Of a stretch of 6,696 nt of DNA, positions 24-6,513 are shown piece by piece. Numbering within the stretch: the first letter of the stretch is position 1; every line of letters starts with the position of its first letter. The stretch is from the IMG/VR virus record IMGVR_UViG_3300033830_000011, positions 1-6,696 of that record; one strand, written 5' to 3'. Position numbers and translations under genes: made by a program. Under the pieces are notes generated by a model. That model had not been told where the DNA came from. It worked only from the letters and a program-made list of their open reading frames with translations, and did no database searches.

Positions 24-93
24 ATTAGGGGGAAACTTAAAGACCCTTCAGATATCCCCAGTGGGGGACACTCCCACACCCCCAATCCTAAAG
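24..93. repeat. Intergenic modular G/C-run repeat, cluster I
   Basis: Contains GAAACTTAAAGACCCTTCAGA (32-52), GATATCCCCA (51-60), GACACTCCCA (67-76) and CCCCCAATCCTA (79-90). These blocks recur at 814-924 and 5630-5706. Confidence 0.9.
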
Positions 94-129
94 TAATTTA
101 TTTTTTAACTTATTCTCCTACTTCTTCAT

Positions 130-762
130 ATGAAAAGACTGTTACTACTGCTTTTAGTTCCTCTCATGGCATCTCTGCTAGTAGTCGCAACAACGGGAGG
201 AGCTGTTTTAGACTGGTCTGACGGTAGTGCCGTTGTAACGATACAACCGCTTTCTGAGACAGTTATAGACGGTTACGTCGTTAATGCGTTTTATAACGGC
301 TCTAATCAAGTAGTCCTCTTAGCTGAGCCCTACTACCAAGGTCAAAACTTACAACAAGTTACGTTCTCTCTCTATGATTATTACACGCATCAATTGATCG
401 GTAACTACACATTACAAGACAACTACACCGTTGTAACAGTACCATCCAACATAACCGTTATCTTCATTTACTTCGATAGTCAGCAATTCGGACCATTCTA
501 CATAACTACAAACGGTGGGAATTATGCACCTCCGCTCCTCGAACAAATGCTGATGTACGTAATTCCGTTATCTTCAGTAGCTTTGTTCGGACTTAGAGCG
601 GGTCTGAGAAACGTAGGACTGGGGTTAATAGTATCGTCAGTGTTTACGACAGCGGAAATGGTAGCACTCGGTGTCTCAAACCTGTGGCTATATGCTATAC
701 CTACACTGGAGGTGTTGTTTGCCATTATACTGTTATGGCATAGCGTTCAAACGTCAGGTTAG
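130..762 (+). CDS. Membrane-anchored surface glycoprotein (putative virion/envelope protein), 210 aa
   Basis: N-terminal signal peptide (MKRLLLLLLVPLMASLLVVA). A beta-rich, Y/N/T-rich ectodomain has 4 N-X-S/T sequons (NGS, NYT, NYT, NIT), followed by about 3 C-terminal hydrophobic helices. The function is inferred. Confidence 0.8.
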   Translation: MKRLLLLLLVPLMASLLVVATTGGAVLDWSDGSAVVTIQPLSETVIDGYVVNAFYNGSNQVVLLAEPYYQGQNLQQVTFSLYDYYTHQLIGNYTLQDNYTVVTVPSNITVIFIYFDSQQFGPFYITTNGGNYAPPLLEQMLMYVIPLSSVALFGLRAGLRNVGLGLIVSSVFTTAEMVALGVSNLWLYAIPTLEVLFAIILLWHSVQTSG

Positions 763-790
763 TCAAGGGGAAGTTGACAAAACGTCTCTT

Positions 791-926
791 TGGGGGGATA
801 TAATTCTGTGGGAGAAACTTAAAGACCCTTCAGACACTCCCATTAGGGGGATACCCCCTAAGACCCCCAATGCTAGTGAGGGAAACTTAAAGACCTTTCA
901 GATACCCCCACACCCCCAATGCTAAG
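791..926. repeat. Intergenic modular G/C-run repeat, cluster II (two tandem units)
   Basis: The 21-mer occurs at 814-834 (identical to 32-52) and at 882-902 (1 mismatch). CCCCCAATGCTA occurs at 864-875 and 913-924. There is a perfect inverted repeat TTAGGGGG-ATA-CCCCCTAA at 843-861. Confidence 0.92.
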
Positions 927-956
927 ATTTTTCTTATTTAACACTCTTTTTCTGTC

Positions 957-1700
957 ATGACAACTACAACACTCCCTCCACCGGTAACAGTTCCTGCTCT
1001 ATCGTCATCATCTGCAGTTGTATCATCTTTTTCACCCGACATCCTCGAATACGCTATGATTACAGTCTTCGCAGGAGTGATAATTTACATTGCGTACAAA
1101 CTCTTCCGTAAACCAAGTTACCGTTACTGGTTAAGGCTTATTGACGGTAACGAAGAAAGGGAGATACCGTTAACCAGGATAGACGAGGTCAACTTCGTCA
1201 GTGTGAGGGGGAATATACGTGTTTATAAAGACCCTACAGTTAAGATGATTAAGAGCGGAAGGAGGTACATACTTTACGGCTGGGGTATACAGCCCTACTA
1301 TATTGCAAAGGACCCGCAAACACTTGTCAACGTCGGGATCCGAGACTTAGTACTAAGGGTCGGAAACAAGGAGATAAAATTCGACGGAACGTGGAAGTCA
1401 ATCGTCGATTATTACACTTACCTGATAAAAAGTAGGATTGACACCATGAGAGAACTTACACTTGATACTAACACACAACTCGTCATAGCAGTAGATTATC
1501 CCAGTATATTCAAGAACTCCGTTGAGGACTTACTCCACACTAACGTAAAGCACTCACTGAGACAATTAGAGGAAATAGTAAACATAGAGAAGAACGTAAC
1601 GGCTACAAAGTCTACGGACTTCTCATGGATGAGATGGCTCATAATAGCGTTTATGATAATGGGTGTATTCCTGTTAGCCTTGTCGGTGATACACAAATGA
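957..1700 (+). CDS. Membrane protein with N- and C-terminal TM helices and a central soluble domain, 247 aa
   Basis: T/P/S-rich N-terminus, then a TM segment (YAMITVFAGVIIYIAY) followed by basic KLFRK, and a C-terminal TM segment (WLIIAFMIMGVFLLALSVI). The stop codon overlaps the ATPase start (ATGA at 1697-1700). Confidence 0.8.
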   Translation: MTTTTLPPPVTVPALSSSSAVVSSFSPDILEYAMITVFAGVIIYIAYKLFRKPSYRYWLRLIDGNEEREIPLTRIDEVNFVSVRGNIRVYKDPTVKMIKSGRRYILYGWGIQPYYIAKDPQTLVNVGIRDLVLRVGNKEIKFDGTWKSIVDYYTYLIKSRIDTMRELTLDTNTQLVIAVDYPSIFKNSVEDLLHTNVKHSLRQLEEIVNIEKNVTATKSTDFSWMRWLIIAFMIMGVFLLALSVIHK

Positions 1701-3004
1701 TATGCCGAAAAGTTGTAAGGAACTCCTCAGGGGAAGTACTCAGGAGACCTATCAATTGCAACGAAATTGCCCCTTATACTGACGTTAAGACGGTAGGAGA
1801 AGTCAAAGTAGAGGAGGTCAAGGGATATATAGTAGTTACCGCAGATGACGTATACGTTTACCCGAAAAGTGTATGGGAACGAATACAGTTTTACGTTGAC
1901 TATTTCAGAAAAAACGGTGTCTTCCCAAATCCCGGTTTGCTCTTTACGGGACCACCCGGAACCGGAAAAACAACATTGTCCAGAATAATTACCGAAATGT
2001 TAGGGTTGGACAGAGTTTTCTTCAGTTTCGCTGAAGTCTTAGGACCCTACGTCGGGCAGAGTGAAAAGGGTTTTCAAGCGAAAATCGATGAAGCTATGAG
2101 ATCACGCCCTTCTGCTCTAATAATCGATGAAGCTGACACTTTGCTCATGTCAAGAGAAGTTATGGTACAAAGGATAGGCGTGTCATCTGCAGACATTAAC
2201 ATAAAGTCAATGCTACTCGACACGATGTCCAAGATGAGGGAGAGTGACGTATTGTTTATTGCAATAACCAACATTTCACCATCTCTCATTGACAGTGCGT
2301 TAAAAAGAGAAGGGAGATTCGGTGAACCGGTCTACGTCCCGGTACCAACAAAGGACGCAATAGAGATACTCATAGAAAGGAAGTTTCCGCAACACATTAA
2401 TAAACGGGAAGAGTTAGCGTCAAAGCTCGCTTCATCAATGCAGAACTTCGCTAACATAGTGTCCTATCTGAAAAGATTGGAATACGGCATAGACAGACTT
2501 CCCGAGGAGTCATTACGCGGTTACAGGATAATTTACGTTAAGAAACCGTACAGTGATAGAAGACTTGAGAAGTTTTTTTCCTCACTCGACTACCCTGAGC
2601 TTTACTTCGCGAAAGCAAACCCGGATCTAGCGATACCTGTACTTGCAGCTTATTTCGTTTCTGTCGGTAAAGGGAACGTAGTCGTTTATAACGCAAAGGG
2701 ACTGGAAGAGGCGATAAAAGTAGCTGAAACATATAACGCCGTGCTCATCGTGGACGAGAGGAGCGGGATACCGATAAAGGAACTGTTTCGCGTTGCAAAC
2801 GTCCCGATTGTCGTTGTCGGAGACAATGTTACGGCAAAGGAAGTTTTTCATGTAGACGAATATAACGAAGACATGATAAACATCATCTTCAGTGCGTATA
2901 ACATTAGGGTGACACCGAAGAGATATGCCTTGTCTGATTTGGAAAGGATCGTTTACCACTGTAAAGGAGGTGATGAGAGTTGCGTAAAGAAGTTGAGAGA
3001 GTAG
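1697..3004 (+). CDS. AAA+ ATPase, classic clade (Cdc48/p97/Vps4-like), about 435 aa, with a degenerate C-terminal second AAA-like region
   Basis: Walker A GPPGTGKT (1949-1972), pore loop EVLGPYVGQSEK, Walker B ALIIDEAD, and sensor-1/SRH IAITN..SLIDSALKREGRF. I moved the start from 1625 to ATG 1697 because of the ATGA overlap with the upstream stop and the GGTGA SD at 1685-1689. Confidence 0.92.
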   Translation: MICRKVVRNSSGEVLRRPINCNEIAPYTDVKTVGEVKVEEVKGYIVVTADDVYVYPKSVWERIQFYVDYFRKNGVFPNPGLLFTGPPGTGKTTLSRIITEMLGLDRVFFSFAEVLGPYVGQSEKGFQAKIDEAMRSRPSALIIDEADTLLMSREVMVQRIGVSSADINIKSMLLDTMSKMRESDVLFIAITNISPSLIDSALKREGRFGEPVYVPVPTKDAIEILIERKFPQHINKREELASKLASSMQNFANIVSYLKRLEYGIDRLPEESLRGYRIIYVKKPYSDRRLEKFFSSLDYPELYFAKANPDLAIPVLAAYFVSVGKGNVVVYNAKGLEEAIKVAETYNAVLIVDERSGIPIKELFRVANVPIVVVGDNVTAKEVFHVDEYNEDMINIIFSAYNIRVTPKRYALSDLERIVYHCKGGDESCVKKLRE

Positions 3005-4041
3005 CCGTATTTCTAGGAGCGTTAACATTTGTAAACGGTGTATTATCATTGGAAGTAGCCTCCGTTATAGTGTACATGTTTTACATTCTAGCTGTAGTAT
3101 TCGCTTTCCTTTACCTTGTGAAAGACGACAGAAGGTTTGCTGACTTAATCGTGTTCTTTACGTTTGTCGCCGCATTTACTGCAGTTTCAGTATACAGAGT
3201 CCCATCACAAACGGACGAAGAAAGTCTTGTGTTATATGCGGCTTATCTTTTCAGACACGGGATTAACCCCTATACGGCTAACTTCATCAACGCTTATAAG
3301 ATGTTTCCCGTAGCCGAACCCGTCGTTACTGTTACACTTACTCCCAGTTATTACGTTAACGTGTTCGGTTACCCTGCGTTATATTTCGAGATAGCTTCCG
3401 TAGTGTACCCTCAGATCGTCACGCTTGTTACAACGTTTCTGCTTTACCCCTTTCTGAGGTGGAAGGGTAAGGAGAAGTTATTCTTCATTATAATGCTGAT
3501 AGAAGGGAGCTACTCAGCTTTCACCGGTGGTACGTTTGACATAATATCATTAACTATCGCGGTCATAGCACTTACAACGAAAGGTTGGATCAGGACAACA
3601 TTTATGACGTTGAGCGGTGACATTAAGCAATACACATTACTTTACTTACCGTTTATATGGAAGGATTATTGGGGTAAATGGAAAGAGCTGACAAAGAACA
3701 TCCTCATACCGCTAACCGTTTTTCTAATTCCCAACTTACCCTTCATCTCGTTTAAATGGGCTTTCGACGTATTAGGCCCTCTCACGCAACCCATTGCAAA
3801 CCAAGGTACTTCACTCAGTTTGTTGACTATGATAGGCGTGCCCATTCCGCATATTGCGTATACTATCGCTTTTCTGACGCTCTATGTCGCGTTGTTGGTG
3901 CTGTATAAACCTAACACTAAGTGGAAGTGGATCCTCCCGGCTTTCATCTGGCTCGTGAGTTGGAGGGATTTGAATTATTTCTTATTCTACATAACGGTAT
4001 GGGTGAGCAGTTATGAACTGGAAAGTGCTGGTGATAATTAG
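2980..4041 (+). CDS. Polytopic membrane protein, probable GT-C fold glycosyltransferase (GT87/PMT-like), 353 aa
   Basis: Many hydrophobic helices. The first large loop carries an acidic TDEE motif followed by GINPY and YPALYF, with a later IKQY motif; this pattern resembles lipid-linked-sugar-dependent GT-C enzymes. TTG start with a strong SD, GGAGGTGA, at 2966-2973. Confidence 0.7.
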   Translation: MRKEVERVAVFLGALTFVNGVLSLEVASVIVYMFYILAVVFAFLYLVKDDRRFADLIVFFTFVAAFTAVSVYRVPSQTDEESLVLYAAYLFRHGINPYTANFINAYKMFPVAEPVVTVTLTPSYYVNVFGYPALYFEIASVVYPQIVTLVTTFLLYPFLRWKGKEKLFFIIMLIEGSYSAFTGGTFDIISLTIAVIALTTKGWIRTTFMTLSGDIKQYTLLYLPFIWKDYWGKWKELTKNILIPLTVFLIPNLPFISFKWAFDVLGPLTQPIANQGTSLSLLTMIGVPIPHIAYTIAFLTLYVALLVLYKPNTKWKWILPAFIWLVSWRDLNYFLFYITVWVSSYELESAGDN

Positions 4042-4732
4042 TCTCATTGTACTCGAAATTCTCGCTATCTCTTTATTGTGGAAACCGACATTACCGTTGA
4101 CGGTCTACATCGTAAGGGTCTATGACGTCGGCGATGTAGGGTACTGGGACGTAGTATGTTTGAACGTTACTAACCACGGAAACTCTCCAATTCACCCTAT
4201 TTTCCTACTTAACGAGTTCGGTAGTGAGAAGAGGTGGGTCGTTTTGAGCCAAATCATACCATACGTACCGTATAATTGTACGTTGCCCGTTATTTCACCT
4301 CACTCATGGCGTCTTATCAATATCTCTGCACCATCACCCCTTTACTTCATACCGCCTTTTACACCGATTTATGTACAAGTCTATTCGGTGGGGGATACAC
4401 CCATACCCCCAATGCTCTTTGTAAACTCTCCCGTTTACATAACGCCTAACATAACTAGACCTCTTATCATCAACCCAAACTTTACCGTTCTGTATTATAG
4501 CGGGAAGTATAACGAGGAGTTACCGTGGGGTTGGTACGTCGAACTCGCTCCGGGGACTAAACTTTCTTACCATGACGGCGTTATTGTAAACGGTACAGCG
4601 ATATTTTACCAACCGGTTTTCGACGCGAATGTGACGGTAATCGGTTACAATGTCTCTTACACGGTCTCTGGCAATACACTGTTCATCTACGTCCATGACG
4701 GTTATGTGAGAGGTGTCGTACTTGGGTCGTGA
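4013..4732 (+). CDS. Membrane-anchored/secreted beta-rich glycoprotein, 239 aa
   Basis: N-terminal hydrophobic helix and a V/Y/P/N-rich ectodomain with 8 sequons (NVT, NCT, NIS, NIT, NFT, NGT, NVT, NVS). SD GGTGA at 4002-4006. Confidence 0.8.
   Translation: MNWKVLVIISLIVLEILAISLLWKPTLPLTVYIVRVYDVGDVGYWDVVCLNVTNHGNSPIHPIFLLNEFGSEKRWVVLSQIIPYVPYNCTLPVISPHSWRLINISAPSPLYFIPPFTPIYVQVYSVGDTPIPPMLFVNSPVYITPNITRPLIINPNFTVLYYSGKYNEELPWGWYVELAPGTKLSYHDGVIVNGTAIFYQPVFDANVTVIGYNVSYTVSGNTLFIYVHDGYVRGVVLGS
4388..4416. repeat. Intragenic copy of the G/C-run repeat
   Basis: GTGGGGGATACACCCATACCCCCAATGCT matches 61-89 (GTGGGGGACACTCCCACACCCCCAATCCT) at 25 of 29 positions without gaps. Confidence 0.8.
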
Positions 4733-5054
4733 AATATGTGAAAAATTTGTGAACGACATCATCAAGAAAGCAAAGAGTAAAATATATTATTTCAGCGACA
4801 GAAAGAACGGGTTTTACAGTTACTACGGTGTACAAGCTAAAAAGTTAAAGTACTTCATTGAGGACGATGAGGAGCTAGTGAAACTATGTGAAAAGAAGTA
4901 TGACACGCTGGAAATGTGTGTGTCAAAACTTCTAAATTATTGTGCGGAGAGAGAAAACTACCAACCGGCGATCTACATTTACGGTAGGATATTCTTTAAT
5001 AAACCGATAAACATAGATGAACTCAGGAGGTTGGTACAAAATGTTAGGAGATGA
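4722..5054 (+). CDS. Hypothetical soluble K/Y-rich protein, about 110 aa
   Basis: The ORF overlaps both neighbours in operon fashion. TTG at 4722 with SD GAGGTG (4710-4715) is preferred over GTG at 4713. Confidence 0.7.
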   Translation: MGREICEKFVNDIIKKAKSKIYYFSDRKNGFYSYYGVQAKKLKYFIEDDEELVKLCEKKYDTLEMCVSKLLNYCAERENYQPAIYIYGRIFFNKPINIDELRRLVQNVRR

Positions 5055-5379
5055 GTTGATCGTAACGTTATCGATAGACTTTATTGCGTTGTCGCTTCAG
5101 TTGTATCTCATCAACAAGGATACACCGTTTTATCTTGACGCTCTCATTACGATCTTTCTTGCGATTTTCAACTTCGCTTCATACTTAAACGGTATAATTT
5201 ATGTTGCTGGCGAGAATGAGACAAAGTTAAACAACTCAACAGTTATAATAACGCCTGTTTATAAGCCCGATCCCTTTGCTCCTCTTTTCATGATAGGGTT
5301 CGCTATAACGATAGTATCGGCTTTCCTGCTAATAATAAAAATATTTACGAAAAAAGGAAGTTTCGAATTATTTCCTTAA
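5041..5379 (+). CDS. Small 3-TM membrane protein, about 112 aa
   Basis: Three hydrophobic segments, with a loop ENETKLNNST carrying 3 sequons. ATG 5041 follows GGAGGT (5026-5031); the alternative start is 5017. Confidence 0.75.
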   Translation: MLGDELIVTLSIDFIALSLQLYLINKDTPFYLDALITIFLAIFNFASYLNGIIYVAGENETKLNNSTVIITPVYKPDPFAPLFMIGFAITIVSAFLLIIKIFTKKGSFELFP

Positions 5380-5583
5380 TGTCCTCTCTAAAACAGCACC
5401 GCAGTATGTAGTATCCAGATGTCTTTGTAAAAAGAACACGTTTTTAAATTTTTTACCACATACAGGGCATTTTTTCTCCTTTATCGAACCTAGGATGTCA
5501 ATATTCTTTTTTTCTGCATTCATAATCAGCCATCTCATTCCCAGTAACTTCTTATACCTTGAAACCGCATAAAGTTCTTTCAT
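5368..5583 (-). CDS. Small zinc-finger protein (C2H2/C2HC type), putative transcription regulator, 71 aa
   Basis: CPVCGKKFKNVFFLQRHLDTTYC gives C-x2-C-x3-F-x5-L-x2-H-x5-C. The protein is basic and has a correctly spaced upstream TATA box. Small zinc-finger proteins of this kind are common in crenarchaeal viruses. Confidence 0.85.
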   Translation of the reverse strand: MKELYAVSRYKKLLGMRWLIMNAEKKNIDILGSIKEKKCPVCGKKFKNVFFLQRHLDTTYCGAVLERTLRK

Positions 5584-5594
5584 TATATAATGAA
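5579..5594. promoter_or_regulatory. Perfect 16-bp palindrome (putative operator) over the zinc-finger gene start
   Basis: TTCATTATATAATGAA is its own reverse complement and covers the start codon (5581-5583). Confidence 0.55.
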
Positions 5595-5605
5595 TTCACA
5601 ACTCG

Positions 5606-5619
5606 ATTTAAAACTTTTA
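5606..5619 (-). promoter_or_regulatory. Archaeal BRE-TATA promoter for a leaderless zinc-finger transcript
   Basis: The minus strand reads TAAAAG-TTTTAAAT. TTTAAA lies at -29 to -24 relative to the ATG at 5583, the canonical spacing for leaderless mRNAs in Sulfolobales. Confidence 0.7.
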
Positions 5620-5620
5620 T

Positions 5621-5709
5621 TATTAGGGAGGTACCCCCATTAGAGGGATACTCCCACACCCCCAATCCTAGTTAGGGGAACACCTTCACCCCCCCCCCCC
5701 ATGCTAATA
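5621..5709. repeat. Intergenic modular G/C-run repeat, cluster III
   Basis: GGATACTCCCACACCCCCAATCCTA (5646-5670) matches 66-90 at 24 of 25 positions. It also contains GGTACCCCCA (5630-5639) and a C12 run followed by ATGCTAA (5689-5707). The 21-mer block is absent. Confidence 0.9.
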
Positions 5710-5738
5710 TTTTTATTATTATACAGAGACGTATAACT

Positions 5739-5939
5739 ATGGATGTTATTGACATAATTGTCGCATACAACCCCCTATTTTCCCCGGAAAAGGAGAACAT
5801 TATTATGGTACCGCTGGACTACGTAGAAGAAGTTAAACGATTAGCGAAATCACATAACGCAAAGATCCAAATTTTTCAGAAACGAAGGAGTAAATACGCT
5901 TATATAAGGTGGTACTACCCGGGTGAGAAGGATGAGTGA
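5739..5939 (+). CDS. Small hypothetical protein, 66 aa
   Basis: First ORF after cluster III, with an AT-rich TATA-like tract about 25-30 nt upstream. Its end overlaps the next gene start. Confidence 0.65.
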   Translation: MDVIDIIVAYNPLFSPEKENIIMVPLDYVEEVKRLAKSHNAKIQIFQKRRSKYAYIRWYYPGEKDE

Positions 5940-6513
5940 TGATAAACAGCAACAGCAACAACAGCAGACCGGAATCAGAGGGACAAGTGCAAAAACCGTA
6001 GTAGTGAAAGTAAATCCCTTAACATTTGACGACAATCACGGACTTGTAAAACTCGTAAAACAACCTTTATCGAAGATAAACCTCCTTGAGGAGTTAAAAG
6101 ATGATGACGTTATCAATAACATCAACAAACTTAAACAGTTTGAGAGTGCGGTCATTGCTGCACTGCTTGAGGACCTGCAACAGGAAGTACGTTATATCAC
6201 AGTACCTTCACTTATACTGCCTTTGTTTAAGAACTCAGTGAGGAACGTAATCAGGAACATGATAGTTATTTCAGACGCAGTTTACACCCACGTCCTCAGT
6301 AAGATAAGCAAAGACGTAGACGATAGTGAGAAATTAATGGAAGACTTAAAGCTTATCCAGCATTATCTTGACATTATAAACAGCTTCTACCTTGCAGTCG
6401 ATAACATAAGCATTGTAATTGTGAACCTCCTGAATACTAACTTACCTGCCGATAGGGCACCGCGTCTGATTAACGAAATATTGACGGGGTACGACATATG
6501 GAAACAACATTGA
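5932..6513 (+). CDS. Hypothetical alpha-helical protein with an N-terminal polyQ tract, about 193 aa
   Basis: ATG 5932 is preceded by SD GGTGA (5922-5926) and is preferred over GTG 5923. The composition is amphipathic and helical (L/I/D/N/K-rich). Confidence 0.8.
   Translation: MSDDKQQQQQQQTGIRGTSAKTVVVKVNPLTFDDNHGLVKLVKQPLSKINLLEELKDDDVINNINKLKQFESAVIAALLEDLQQEVRYITVPSLILPLFKNSVRNVIRNMIVISDAVYTHVLSKISKDVDDSEKLMEDLKLIQHYLDIINSFYLAVDNISIVIVNLLNTNLPADRAPRLINEILTGYDIWKQH

Follow-up and report, generated by a model that had tools for sequence, protein, structure and literature searches.

Why should every intergenic region of a small viral contig be assembled from the same short G- and C-rich blocks, and do these blocks control the genes that they precede? 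The question is raised by IMG/VR contig IMGVR_UViG_3300033830_000011, which in its entirety (6,696 nt, 6.7 kb) is the window analysed here. The contig is Sulfolobales virus YNP1-like, with 81% identity to YNP1 across 95% of its length and 78% identity to YNP2 across 68%. A preliminary description had recognised blocks A, B and C in its gaps and had offered two kinds of interpretation, an element-wide cis-acting system or a small dispersed family, either structured-RNA or resembling miniature inverted-repeat transposable elements (MITEs). We find that the blocks are real yet do not make up a conserved control system in this virus. On balance they probably belong to a dispersed, selfish or recombinogenic family of 30-33-nt GC-rich palindromic repeats carried by Sulfolobales viruses, a reading that we hold with moderate confidence and for which the MITE-like family is the best fit among the readings first offered. 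We found no description of this repeat family in the searchable literature.

Block A was recovered at 32, 814 and 882 (three matches at up to three mismatches, none in 200 shuffles), block B at all seven positions reported for it (12 matches, 1.2 expected), and block C at 79, 864, 913 and 5659 together with a degenerate copy at 5695-5706 (seven matches, 0.56 expected); for all three blocks, the observed number was reached by no shuffle. The orientation is uniform, as had been described, with each family copy on the plus strand, and the only minus-strand match (614-625, two mismatches) is a chance match in a coding region. All three intergenic gaps of the window (24-129, 763-956 and 5584-5738) contain blocks. 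A further copy, overlooked in the preliminary description, lies at 4388-4417 inside the open reading frame (ORF) 4013-4732.

The blocks parse better as whole units of 30-33 nt, composed of a perfect 7-8-bp palindrome on G5-N3-C5, then another run of C5 and finally an AATSCTA tail. Unit U1 (33 nt) is TTAGGGGG-ATA-CCCCCTAA-GA-CCCCC-AATGCTA and unit U2 (30 nt) is GTGGGGG-ATA-CCCCCAC-A-CCCCC-AATGCTA, while the A-type unit holds block A between its G-run and C-run. The palindrome is maintained beyond G5:C5. Among 99 distinct G5-N3-C5 sites from viral loci, Watson-Crick pairing holds at the two next outer pairs, of types A-T/T-A and T-A/G-C, in 90/99 and 88/99; shuffled partners give about 47. The units of the window, the promoter-like stretch beside the first of them and two sites that are occupied only in relatives are as follows (related contigs and loci are designated by L numbers; BRE, transcription factor B recognition element).

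25-60, plus strand: A-type unit with a G5 run, block A (32-52) and a C4 run; the homologous unit of L005 has extra flanking modules
61-90, plus strand: U2-type unit of 30 nt, GTG-G5 / ACA / CTCCC-AC / A / C5 / AATCCTA
95-129, plus strand: core promoter-like stretch outside the repeat, BRE/TATA-like AATTTATTTTTTAAC and a conserved spacer to the ATG at 130
792-809, plus strand: degenerate G-run remnant, with G6 at 792-797
810-842, plus strand: A-type unit, GGGAG, block A (814-834) and CTCCC
843-875, plus strand: U1 unit, 33 nt
876-924, plus strand: composite unit, GTGAGGG, block A (882-902), then C5-ACA-C5 with an AATGCTA tail
3661-3690, no strand: unoccupied site s5 in the membrane-protein ORF, where relatives carry +18 to +78 nt of units and YNP1 one inverted unit
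4013-4050, no strand: unoccupied site s6 in the overlap of ORFs 2980-4041 and 4013-4732, where relatives carry +39 to +111 nt
4388-4417, plus strand: U2-like unit in ORF 4013-4732, translated as VGDTPIPPML, a net +21 nt relative to eight empty alleles
5623-5639, plus strand: degenerate hairpin unit, TTAGGGAGG-TA-CCCCCA
5640-5670, plus strand: U2-like unit with an AATCCTA tail
5671-5706, plus strand: degenerate unit, a C12 tract (5689-5700) followed by ATGCTA

The C12 homopolymer at 5689-5700 is likely to be length-variable or sensitive to assembly.

Are the units retained where the genes are retained? We compared eight sites (s1-s8), anchored by their flanks in YNP1, YNP2 and up to ~30 related contigs, and all eight carry 8-16 distinct alleles, from empty to as many as five units. 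In YNP2, seven sites could be placed, four of them intergenic, and all seven are empty, while its whole genome holds no copy; the YNP1 genome has one good copy and decayed relics at s1, s2 and perhaps s4. The YNP1 gaps upstream of the gp18 and gp08 homologues have kept the T-rich promoter sequence and lack the blocks, the gap upstream of gp17 holds a decayed remnant at most, and in YNP2 the gp18 and gp08 gaps, which could be anchored there as the gp17 gap could not, are also devoid of blocks. Site s3 is empty in YNP1, YNP2, L221 and L289, and a single 30-nt U2 is all that separates one of its alleles from the empty ones, the flanks being identical; at s4, L029 holds a single U1, and YNP1 no more than a decayed relic; s8 is empty in YNP1 and YNP2. 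Between identical flanks at s1, a 37.5-kb relative is empty and L005 carries a 57-nt insert with a 12-nt duplication of TATA sequence; the insert at s8, likewise between identical flanks, is bordered by a 9-nt T-rich duplication, and no duplication was seen at s2, s3 and s5. A genome can gain units, multiply them, exchange them between its sites and lose them by decay, and this turnover is faster than the divergence of strains that are 80-95% identical.

These comparisons bear directly on the possibility that the units are upstream operator or activator sites, that is, 17-19-bp palindromes bound by a dimeric host factor or by a protein shared among Sulfolobales viruses, with arrays that tune late or structural transcription. 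The 7-8-bp arms around a 3-bp centre would suit a dimeric binding protein. Some 30 nt ahead of each start codon, the AATSCTA tail adjoins a TATA-like T-run and would therefore, by archaeal promoter geometry, occupy the BRE position of a leaderless-mRNA promoter. Candidate regulators are at hand as well, since a C2H2 zinc-finger gene adjoins the third gap and YNP1 encodes a homologue of transcription factor B (TFB) and repressor-like proteins. YNP1 and YNP2, however, have the same genes, including those for the zinc finger and TFB, and keep the core promoters, but the sites are absent where the sequence is readable; an operator array would be expected to persist at orthologous promoters of relatives that retain the genes, and this is not what we observe. 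Unit number and order vary even among near-identical strains, copies are translated inside ORFs, and contigs related to ampullaviruses (see below) carry units in both orientations; the operator explanation would have to treat the copies in ORFs and beside integrase attachment sites either as strays or as sites at which the same protein plays an architectural role. We therefore consider operator function unlikely, and the genes preceded by units appear not to need them. The same evidence tells against the element-wide cis-acting system that had first been suggested (activator sites, replication or packaging signals), in that the orthologous YNP1 and YNP2 gaps upstream of gp18 and gp08 lack blocks and copy number differs between near-identical strains.

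The stretch at 95-129, for which a promoter function is predicted from archaeal BRE/TATA geometry, is conserved in relatives without the repeat. The core promoters of this module form a repeat of about 45 nt in their own right, made of the TATA-like AATTTATTTTTTAAC and the spacer TCTCCTAYTTCTTC up to the ATG (window 95-129; L005 1116-1156, 1612-1655 and 5622-5659; also in YNP1 and YNP2), which suggests one promoter class in viruses that encode a TFB homologue.

What happens when units enter genes? The three sites inside ORFs are s5 (membrane protein), s6 (the overlap of two ORFs) and s7 (the ORF with the copy at 4388-4417), and the copies there are translated. Of the distinct differences in length seen there, 19/20 (+6 to +111) are divisible by three, compared with 16/38 at the five intergenic sites. 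The lone exception is the YNP1 record, which has ambiguous bases and an inverted unit at this place and a gene annotated as split there. In YNP1 (L066 5182-5256), the homologue of the 353-aa membrane protein of the window is annotated as three coding sequences; since the gp13/gp14 split coincides with the inverted element and the ambiguous bases, it is probably an artefact of assembly or annotation.

Copies also trade sequence with one another within genomes. The linker between the C-runs is TAAGA or TAAAA, and in seven of the nine genomes with at least two informative sites a single variant occupies all sites. The same site carries different variants in different genomes, so that the variants segregate by genome and not by site; parallel mutation is an unlikely cause, and copying between sites is needed.

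Such copying could in principle be the work of a host Y1 transposase of the RAYT (REP-associated tyrosine transposase) or IS200/IS605 TnpA type, acting on single-stranded hairpins, which would make the units an archaeal-virus counterpart of the repetitive extragenic palindromic (REP) sequences and bacterial interspersed mosaic elements (BIMEs). As in the latter, hairpin units stand in mosaic intergenic arrays; a TTAG or AGTG motif is conserved at the 5' foot of the hairpin, and orientation is near-uniform within one replicon region. An unrelated bacterial intergenic repeat, described below, ends in an identical 23-mer, and its conservation stops ~10 nt past the hairpin. This mode, however, would not be expected to leave the 9-12-nt duplications seen at s1 and s8, because Y1 transposition of single-stranded DNA makes no target-site duplication. 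No Y1 transposase was found in the window or among those ORFs of the 37.5-kb contig that are without YNP1/YNP2 homologues, and two ORFs of L263 likewise have no Pfam match. Nor was any gene for an element-specific enzyme found among these ORFs of the 37.5-kb contig, which gave only an acyltransferase and a weak methyltransferase match. Altogether, we judge Y1-mediated transposition very improbable.

How far does the family extend beyond this virus? Positions 834-875 of the window are 95% identical to a stretch of the integrase gene of fusellovirus SSV K1 that adjoins the core of the viral attachment site (attP). In fact, the tRNA-derived attP core is flanked by the element in 9/9 fusellovirus integrase genes (K1, SSV2, two IMG/VR genomes, SSV RH, SSV10, SSeV, one metagenomic virus and SSV1), and no other copies were found in these fusellovirus genomes. 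The element usually lies on the anticodon-stem side of the core. In SSV1 it is on the acceptor side, adjoining the annotated 44-bp integration site, with the palindrome TAGGGGA-TAC-TCCCCTA. In SSV10 and L190 a pair of inverted copies encloses the core, and folding of the SSV10 cassette gives z = -5.7.

The corresponding host junctions are also found. In at least three crenarchaeal genomes among the matches listed, the element starts 4-7 nt past the 3' end of a full tRNA gene; the pattern used for this host-genome scan was too permissive for GC-rich bacteria, and the listed matches are mostly due to chance. At the two loci that were read through (L158 and L170), the element is followed by an antisense fragment of the integrase N-terminus, Int(N), which is the expected attL junction. 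Metagenome contigs provide 15 full-tRNA junctions of the same arrangement, from seven tRNA species, with antisense Int(N) next in 14/15. The Stygiolobus contig L170 additionally has a ParE-like toxin gene and a DDE transposase (2579-2884 and 3182-4240) downstream of its tRNA-His/element/Int(N) junction, which suggests that this locus is a decayed integrated element.

Do the units then act as recombination or accessory sites of an SSV-type integrase, or of another recombinase, which bracket the attP core and allow core swap or cassette exchange between co-infecting viruses, as integron attC sites do? Besides the consistent position beside the core and the host junctions, different tRNA cores occur within the same bracket. 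Yet the 3-bp centre is too short for the core of a canonical tyrosine recombinase, the integrase region of YNP1 shows neither tRNA core nor element, and the 37.5-kb relative has its rearrangement breakpoints away from the elements. In addition, the att core alone is reported to suffice in vitro, where SSV1 and SSV2 Int act on a 44-bp att sequence or on the anticodon stem-loop region alone (review PMC8371274). A role as recombination sites is thus decidedly unlikely in our assessment. A broader version, to which we give a low probability, is that the units serve Sulfolobales viruses of different families as a junction element on which a specific protein acts, be it a recombinase, a transposase that binds hairpins or an architectural factor of the host. 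Inverted repeats would then delimit a swappable tRNA-derived attP cassette inside SSV-type integrase genes, and solo copies would move promoter-proximal DNA and peptide linkers within and between viruses that are unrelated. If this possibility is correct, it would explain changes of integration specificity in SSV-type integrases.

A third virus group is represented by ampullavirus-like contigs related to the Acidianus bottle-shaped virus. These are dense in units that lie exclusively between genes and face either way; L263 has 11 clusters within 5.2 kb, as opposed to about one in the ABV3 reference. In the phage collection, 27 records match the window array, all of them Sulfolobales viruses, and archaeal plasmids in PLSDB gave no BLAST match to it. 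Hosts also keep a record of the element in their CRISPR arrays. Four contigs with three distinct arrays (57-85 repeats, three repeat sequences) each hold one element spacer (L220 2772-2837; L314; L244 445-509; L271 3610-3675), for example from the G6-ACA-C5 hairpin to the AATGCTAATTA tail. The preliminary description had not anticipated that the family is common to fusellovirus integrase/attP regions and ampullavirus-like contigs, nor that its insertions in ORFs keep the frame.

Lineage-specific bursts, seen in three groups of viruses that are unrelated, fit a selfish dispersed palindromic family, as do gain and loss at orthologous sites, decay in YNP1, in-frame copies in ORFs and exchange within genomes. 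We favour a route in which units would spread at the DNA level by templated ectopic copying, that is, by gene conversion or template switching between copies, possibly aided by the G5/C5 palindromes and the common promoter-proximal tail. Tandem arrays might grow and shrink by slippage or unequal exchange. Units would survive only where they are harmless, namely upstream of core promoters, in in-frame protein linkers and beside the attP core of SSV-type integrase genes. They could accordingly be selfish or neutral junction repeats that may modulate promoters or promote recombination between viruses.

Several observations weigh against this interpretation. The 36.5 kb of the 37.5-kb relative that were retrieved and examined have units only at contig positions 8132-18726, which is one co-oriented module of 10.6 kb and the same module as that of the window; this also tells against the element-wide scope proposed earlier. 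Asymmetric parts of the units are co-directional with genes by 70:1 across alleles and at 8/8 sites, of which the eight sites and not the alleles are the independent observations. At five promoters, all in the one co-oriented module, units lie directly upstream of BRE/TATA-like sequences. Such placement is not expected of a purely selfish element unless selection or local gene conversion imposes it. It is the main point in favour of promoter function and is equally expected from gene conversion between the very similar promoters of the module. Next to attP, the palindrome is intact in 9/9 fuselloviruses even though their integrases have diverged to ~42% identity, and the attP-side palindrome of SSV1 contains a compensated stem change, which suggests a function in that context. 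Because 30 and 33 nt are both divisible by three, unit length explains part of the reading-frame result; the length differences do not add up from whole units in any simple way, however, and selection that keeps the frame open explains them better. Target-site duplications occur at two sites only (12 nt at s1 and 9 nt at s8), both T-rich, and we have neither observed a de novo insertion nor identified a mobilising protein. Finally, the alleles come mostly from metagenome assemblies and repeats are prone to mis-assembly, a risk that is countered by the presence of the same structures in isolate genomes (SSV1, SSV2 and K1) and in more than 20 independent assemblies.

Could the units act in RNA instead? 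Placed at the 3' end of an upstream transcript or in the trailer of a reconstituted tRNA gene, a GC hairpin might serve as a stabiliser, insulator or termination aid. The hairpins do follow a stop codon and precede the next T-rich TATA region; at host junctions they begin 4-7 nt past the tRNA 3' end. The third gap is a poor fit, as it lies between divergent genes and is therefore not the 3' end of any plus-strand transcript, and copies are tolerated inside ORFs. The window arrays fold no better than shuffled sequences (z = -0.4, -1.5 and +0.6), the window has no Rfam covariance-model match at E <= 1, and no terminator-like geometry was detected. No bacterial-type terminators or sigma-70 promoters were found at the elements in a window scan that was not designed for archaea. 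An RNA-level role is therefore extremely improbable, and the structured-RNA variant of the earlier interpretation is without support, as is the cis-acting one, so that the dispersed MITE-like family is the part that fits best.

Is the family, then, one of the known kinds of repeat? The earlier impression that the blocks are not a CRISPR, tRNA or insertion sequence (IS) end holds. The window units abut one another without the unique spacers of a CRISPR array. ARAGORN finds no tRNA in the window, and the SSV element adjoins the tRNA fragment and is not part of it, which excludes a tRNA gene or tRNA-derived att core; block A, in particular, has no anticodon-arm complementarity by eye and no ARAGORN match. 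MITEs in the strict sense (~50-500 bp) are larger than the 30-33-nt units, and instead of matching termini the unit has a 7-8-bp palindrome with an asymmetric tail, although whole-unit inverted pairs occur in the SSV10 integrase gene and in L263. Searches of the window and of the 37.5-kb relative's ORFs without YNP1/YNP2 homologues revealed no transposase from which such an element could derive.

Other palindromic repeats offer closer parallels. The GC clusters of Saccharomyces mitochondria are likewise short GC-rich palindromes in an AT-rich genome, with presence or absence between strains and tandem arrays, and lie mainly between genes, although they also occur in frame within a protein gene. 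They have no sequence relationship to the units and belong to another domain of life; the units are shorter, have a fixed asymmetric tail, are common to unrelated viruses and are tied to an integrase attP site. Rickettsia palindromic elements (RPEs) are selfish palindromes inserted in ORFs with the frame kept and a peptide segment added, but they are ~100-150 bp long and chromosomal, whereas the units are 30-33 nt, virus-borne and mostly promoter-proximal. Enterobacterial REP/BIME arrays combine hairpins and other short motifs in variable intergenic mosaics; however, REPs alternate in orientation within BIMEs and are untranslated, and the units lack sequence similarity to REPs, with no RAYT/Y1 found in the viral sequences. 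In T4-type phages, the PeSL (promoter early stem-loop) "mobile regulatory cassettes" repeat a stem-loop and a promoter motif at gene boundaries and are thought to drive recombination and modular shuffling. PeSLs flank hyperplastic regions with novel ORFs, whereas around the units gene order is conserved and only the repeats vary. Within Sulfolobales, extrachromosomal elements such as the Sulfolobus conjugative and pRN plasmids carry short conserved direct-repeat motifs with a central G-run, and rearrangements occur there. Integron attC sites share with the units an imperfect palindrome at gene boundaries, a single orientation and the association with a tyrosine recombinase. Here, by contrast, neither an attI nor an integrase of the integron type is present, ORFs also contain units and the palindrome geometry differs. 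An integron-like attC system can be rejected, as gene order is conserved across alleles without gain or loss of cassettes, the window has no integrase and breakpoints are not at units.

If the dispersed-family interpretation is correct, hyperthermophilic archaeal viruses possess selfish palindromic repeats of an ultra-short class that is their own, and these would let both promoters and proteins vary rapidly, unnoticed by annotation pipelines. The attP bracket, present in each fusellovirus integrase examined, provides a testable handle on how "suicidal" integrases acquire and exchange their targets. Because hosts hold element spacers, a multi-copy sequence of several virus families is under immune surveillance, which could drive unit turnover. 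The units also mark strain-level variation in hot-spring viral populations.

The genes of the window lie on the plus strand with a single exception, and several products of unknown function match PHROGs. Protein searches assigned the following genes.

1700-3004, plus strand: AAA ATPase
2980-4041, plus strand: membrane protein of 353 aa
5368-5583, minus strand: C2H2 zinc-finger protein of 71 aa, the sole minus-strand gene, divergent from the third gap

The zinc-finger gene is kept in YNP1 and YNP2, both without the repeats. The ORF at 5923-6513 opens with a glutamine run encoded by CAG/CAA repeats (5923-5975).

Outside the viruses, the 23-mer GGGGGACACCCCCTAAAACCCCC recurs unchanged as the end of an intergenic repeat of ~100 nt that is unrelated to the units, and the conservation of this repeat breaks off directly after the 23-mer (L204, L207, L208, L215 6103-6125, L223, L237, L239 and ~25 more metagenome loci). 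The contigs are bacterial-looking, with 30-56% G+C and in some cases gut or rumen sample names, and the neighbours are housekeeping genes such as those for glutamine synthetase and an ANTAR regulator. A TnpB/IS605 right end was rejected as its identity because of these neighbours. Sharing of the 23-mer could be due to convergence or to a common recognised motif. In AT-rich contigs (L201, L210, L219, L233, L313; L238, L256, L312), the 23-mer is followed by a conserved (A)TTGGGCAGATGGGAAAGG-like stretch, after which L238, L256 and L312 have a long T-run; judged by its letters, this version looks like the 3' end of a small RNA gene. Neither the bacterial nor the AT-rich repeats with the 23-mer have an Rfam match.

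A metagenome-assembled genome from Kamchatka, labelled "bacterium", has a dispersed repeat of its own, in which CAAGATACATCA is followed by a G5-ATA-C5-TGAAA-C5 core, at no fewer than five sites (at least L110 5927; L145 4092, 7738 and 7933; L152 5533; L300; L315).

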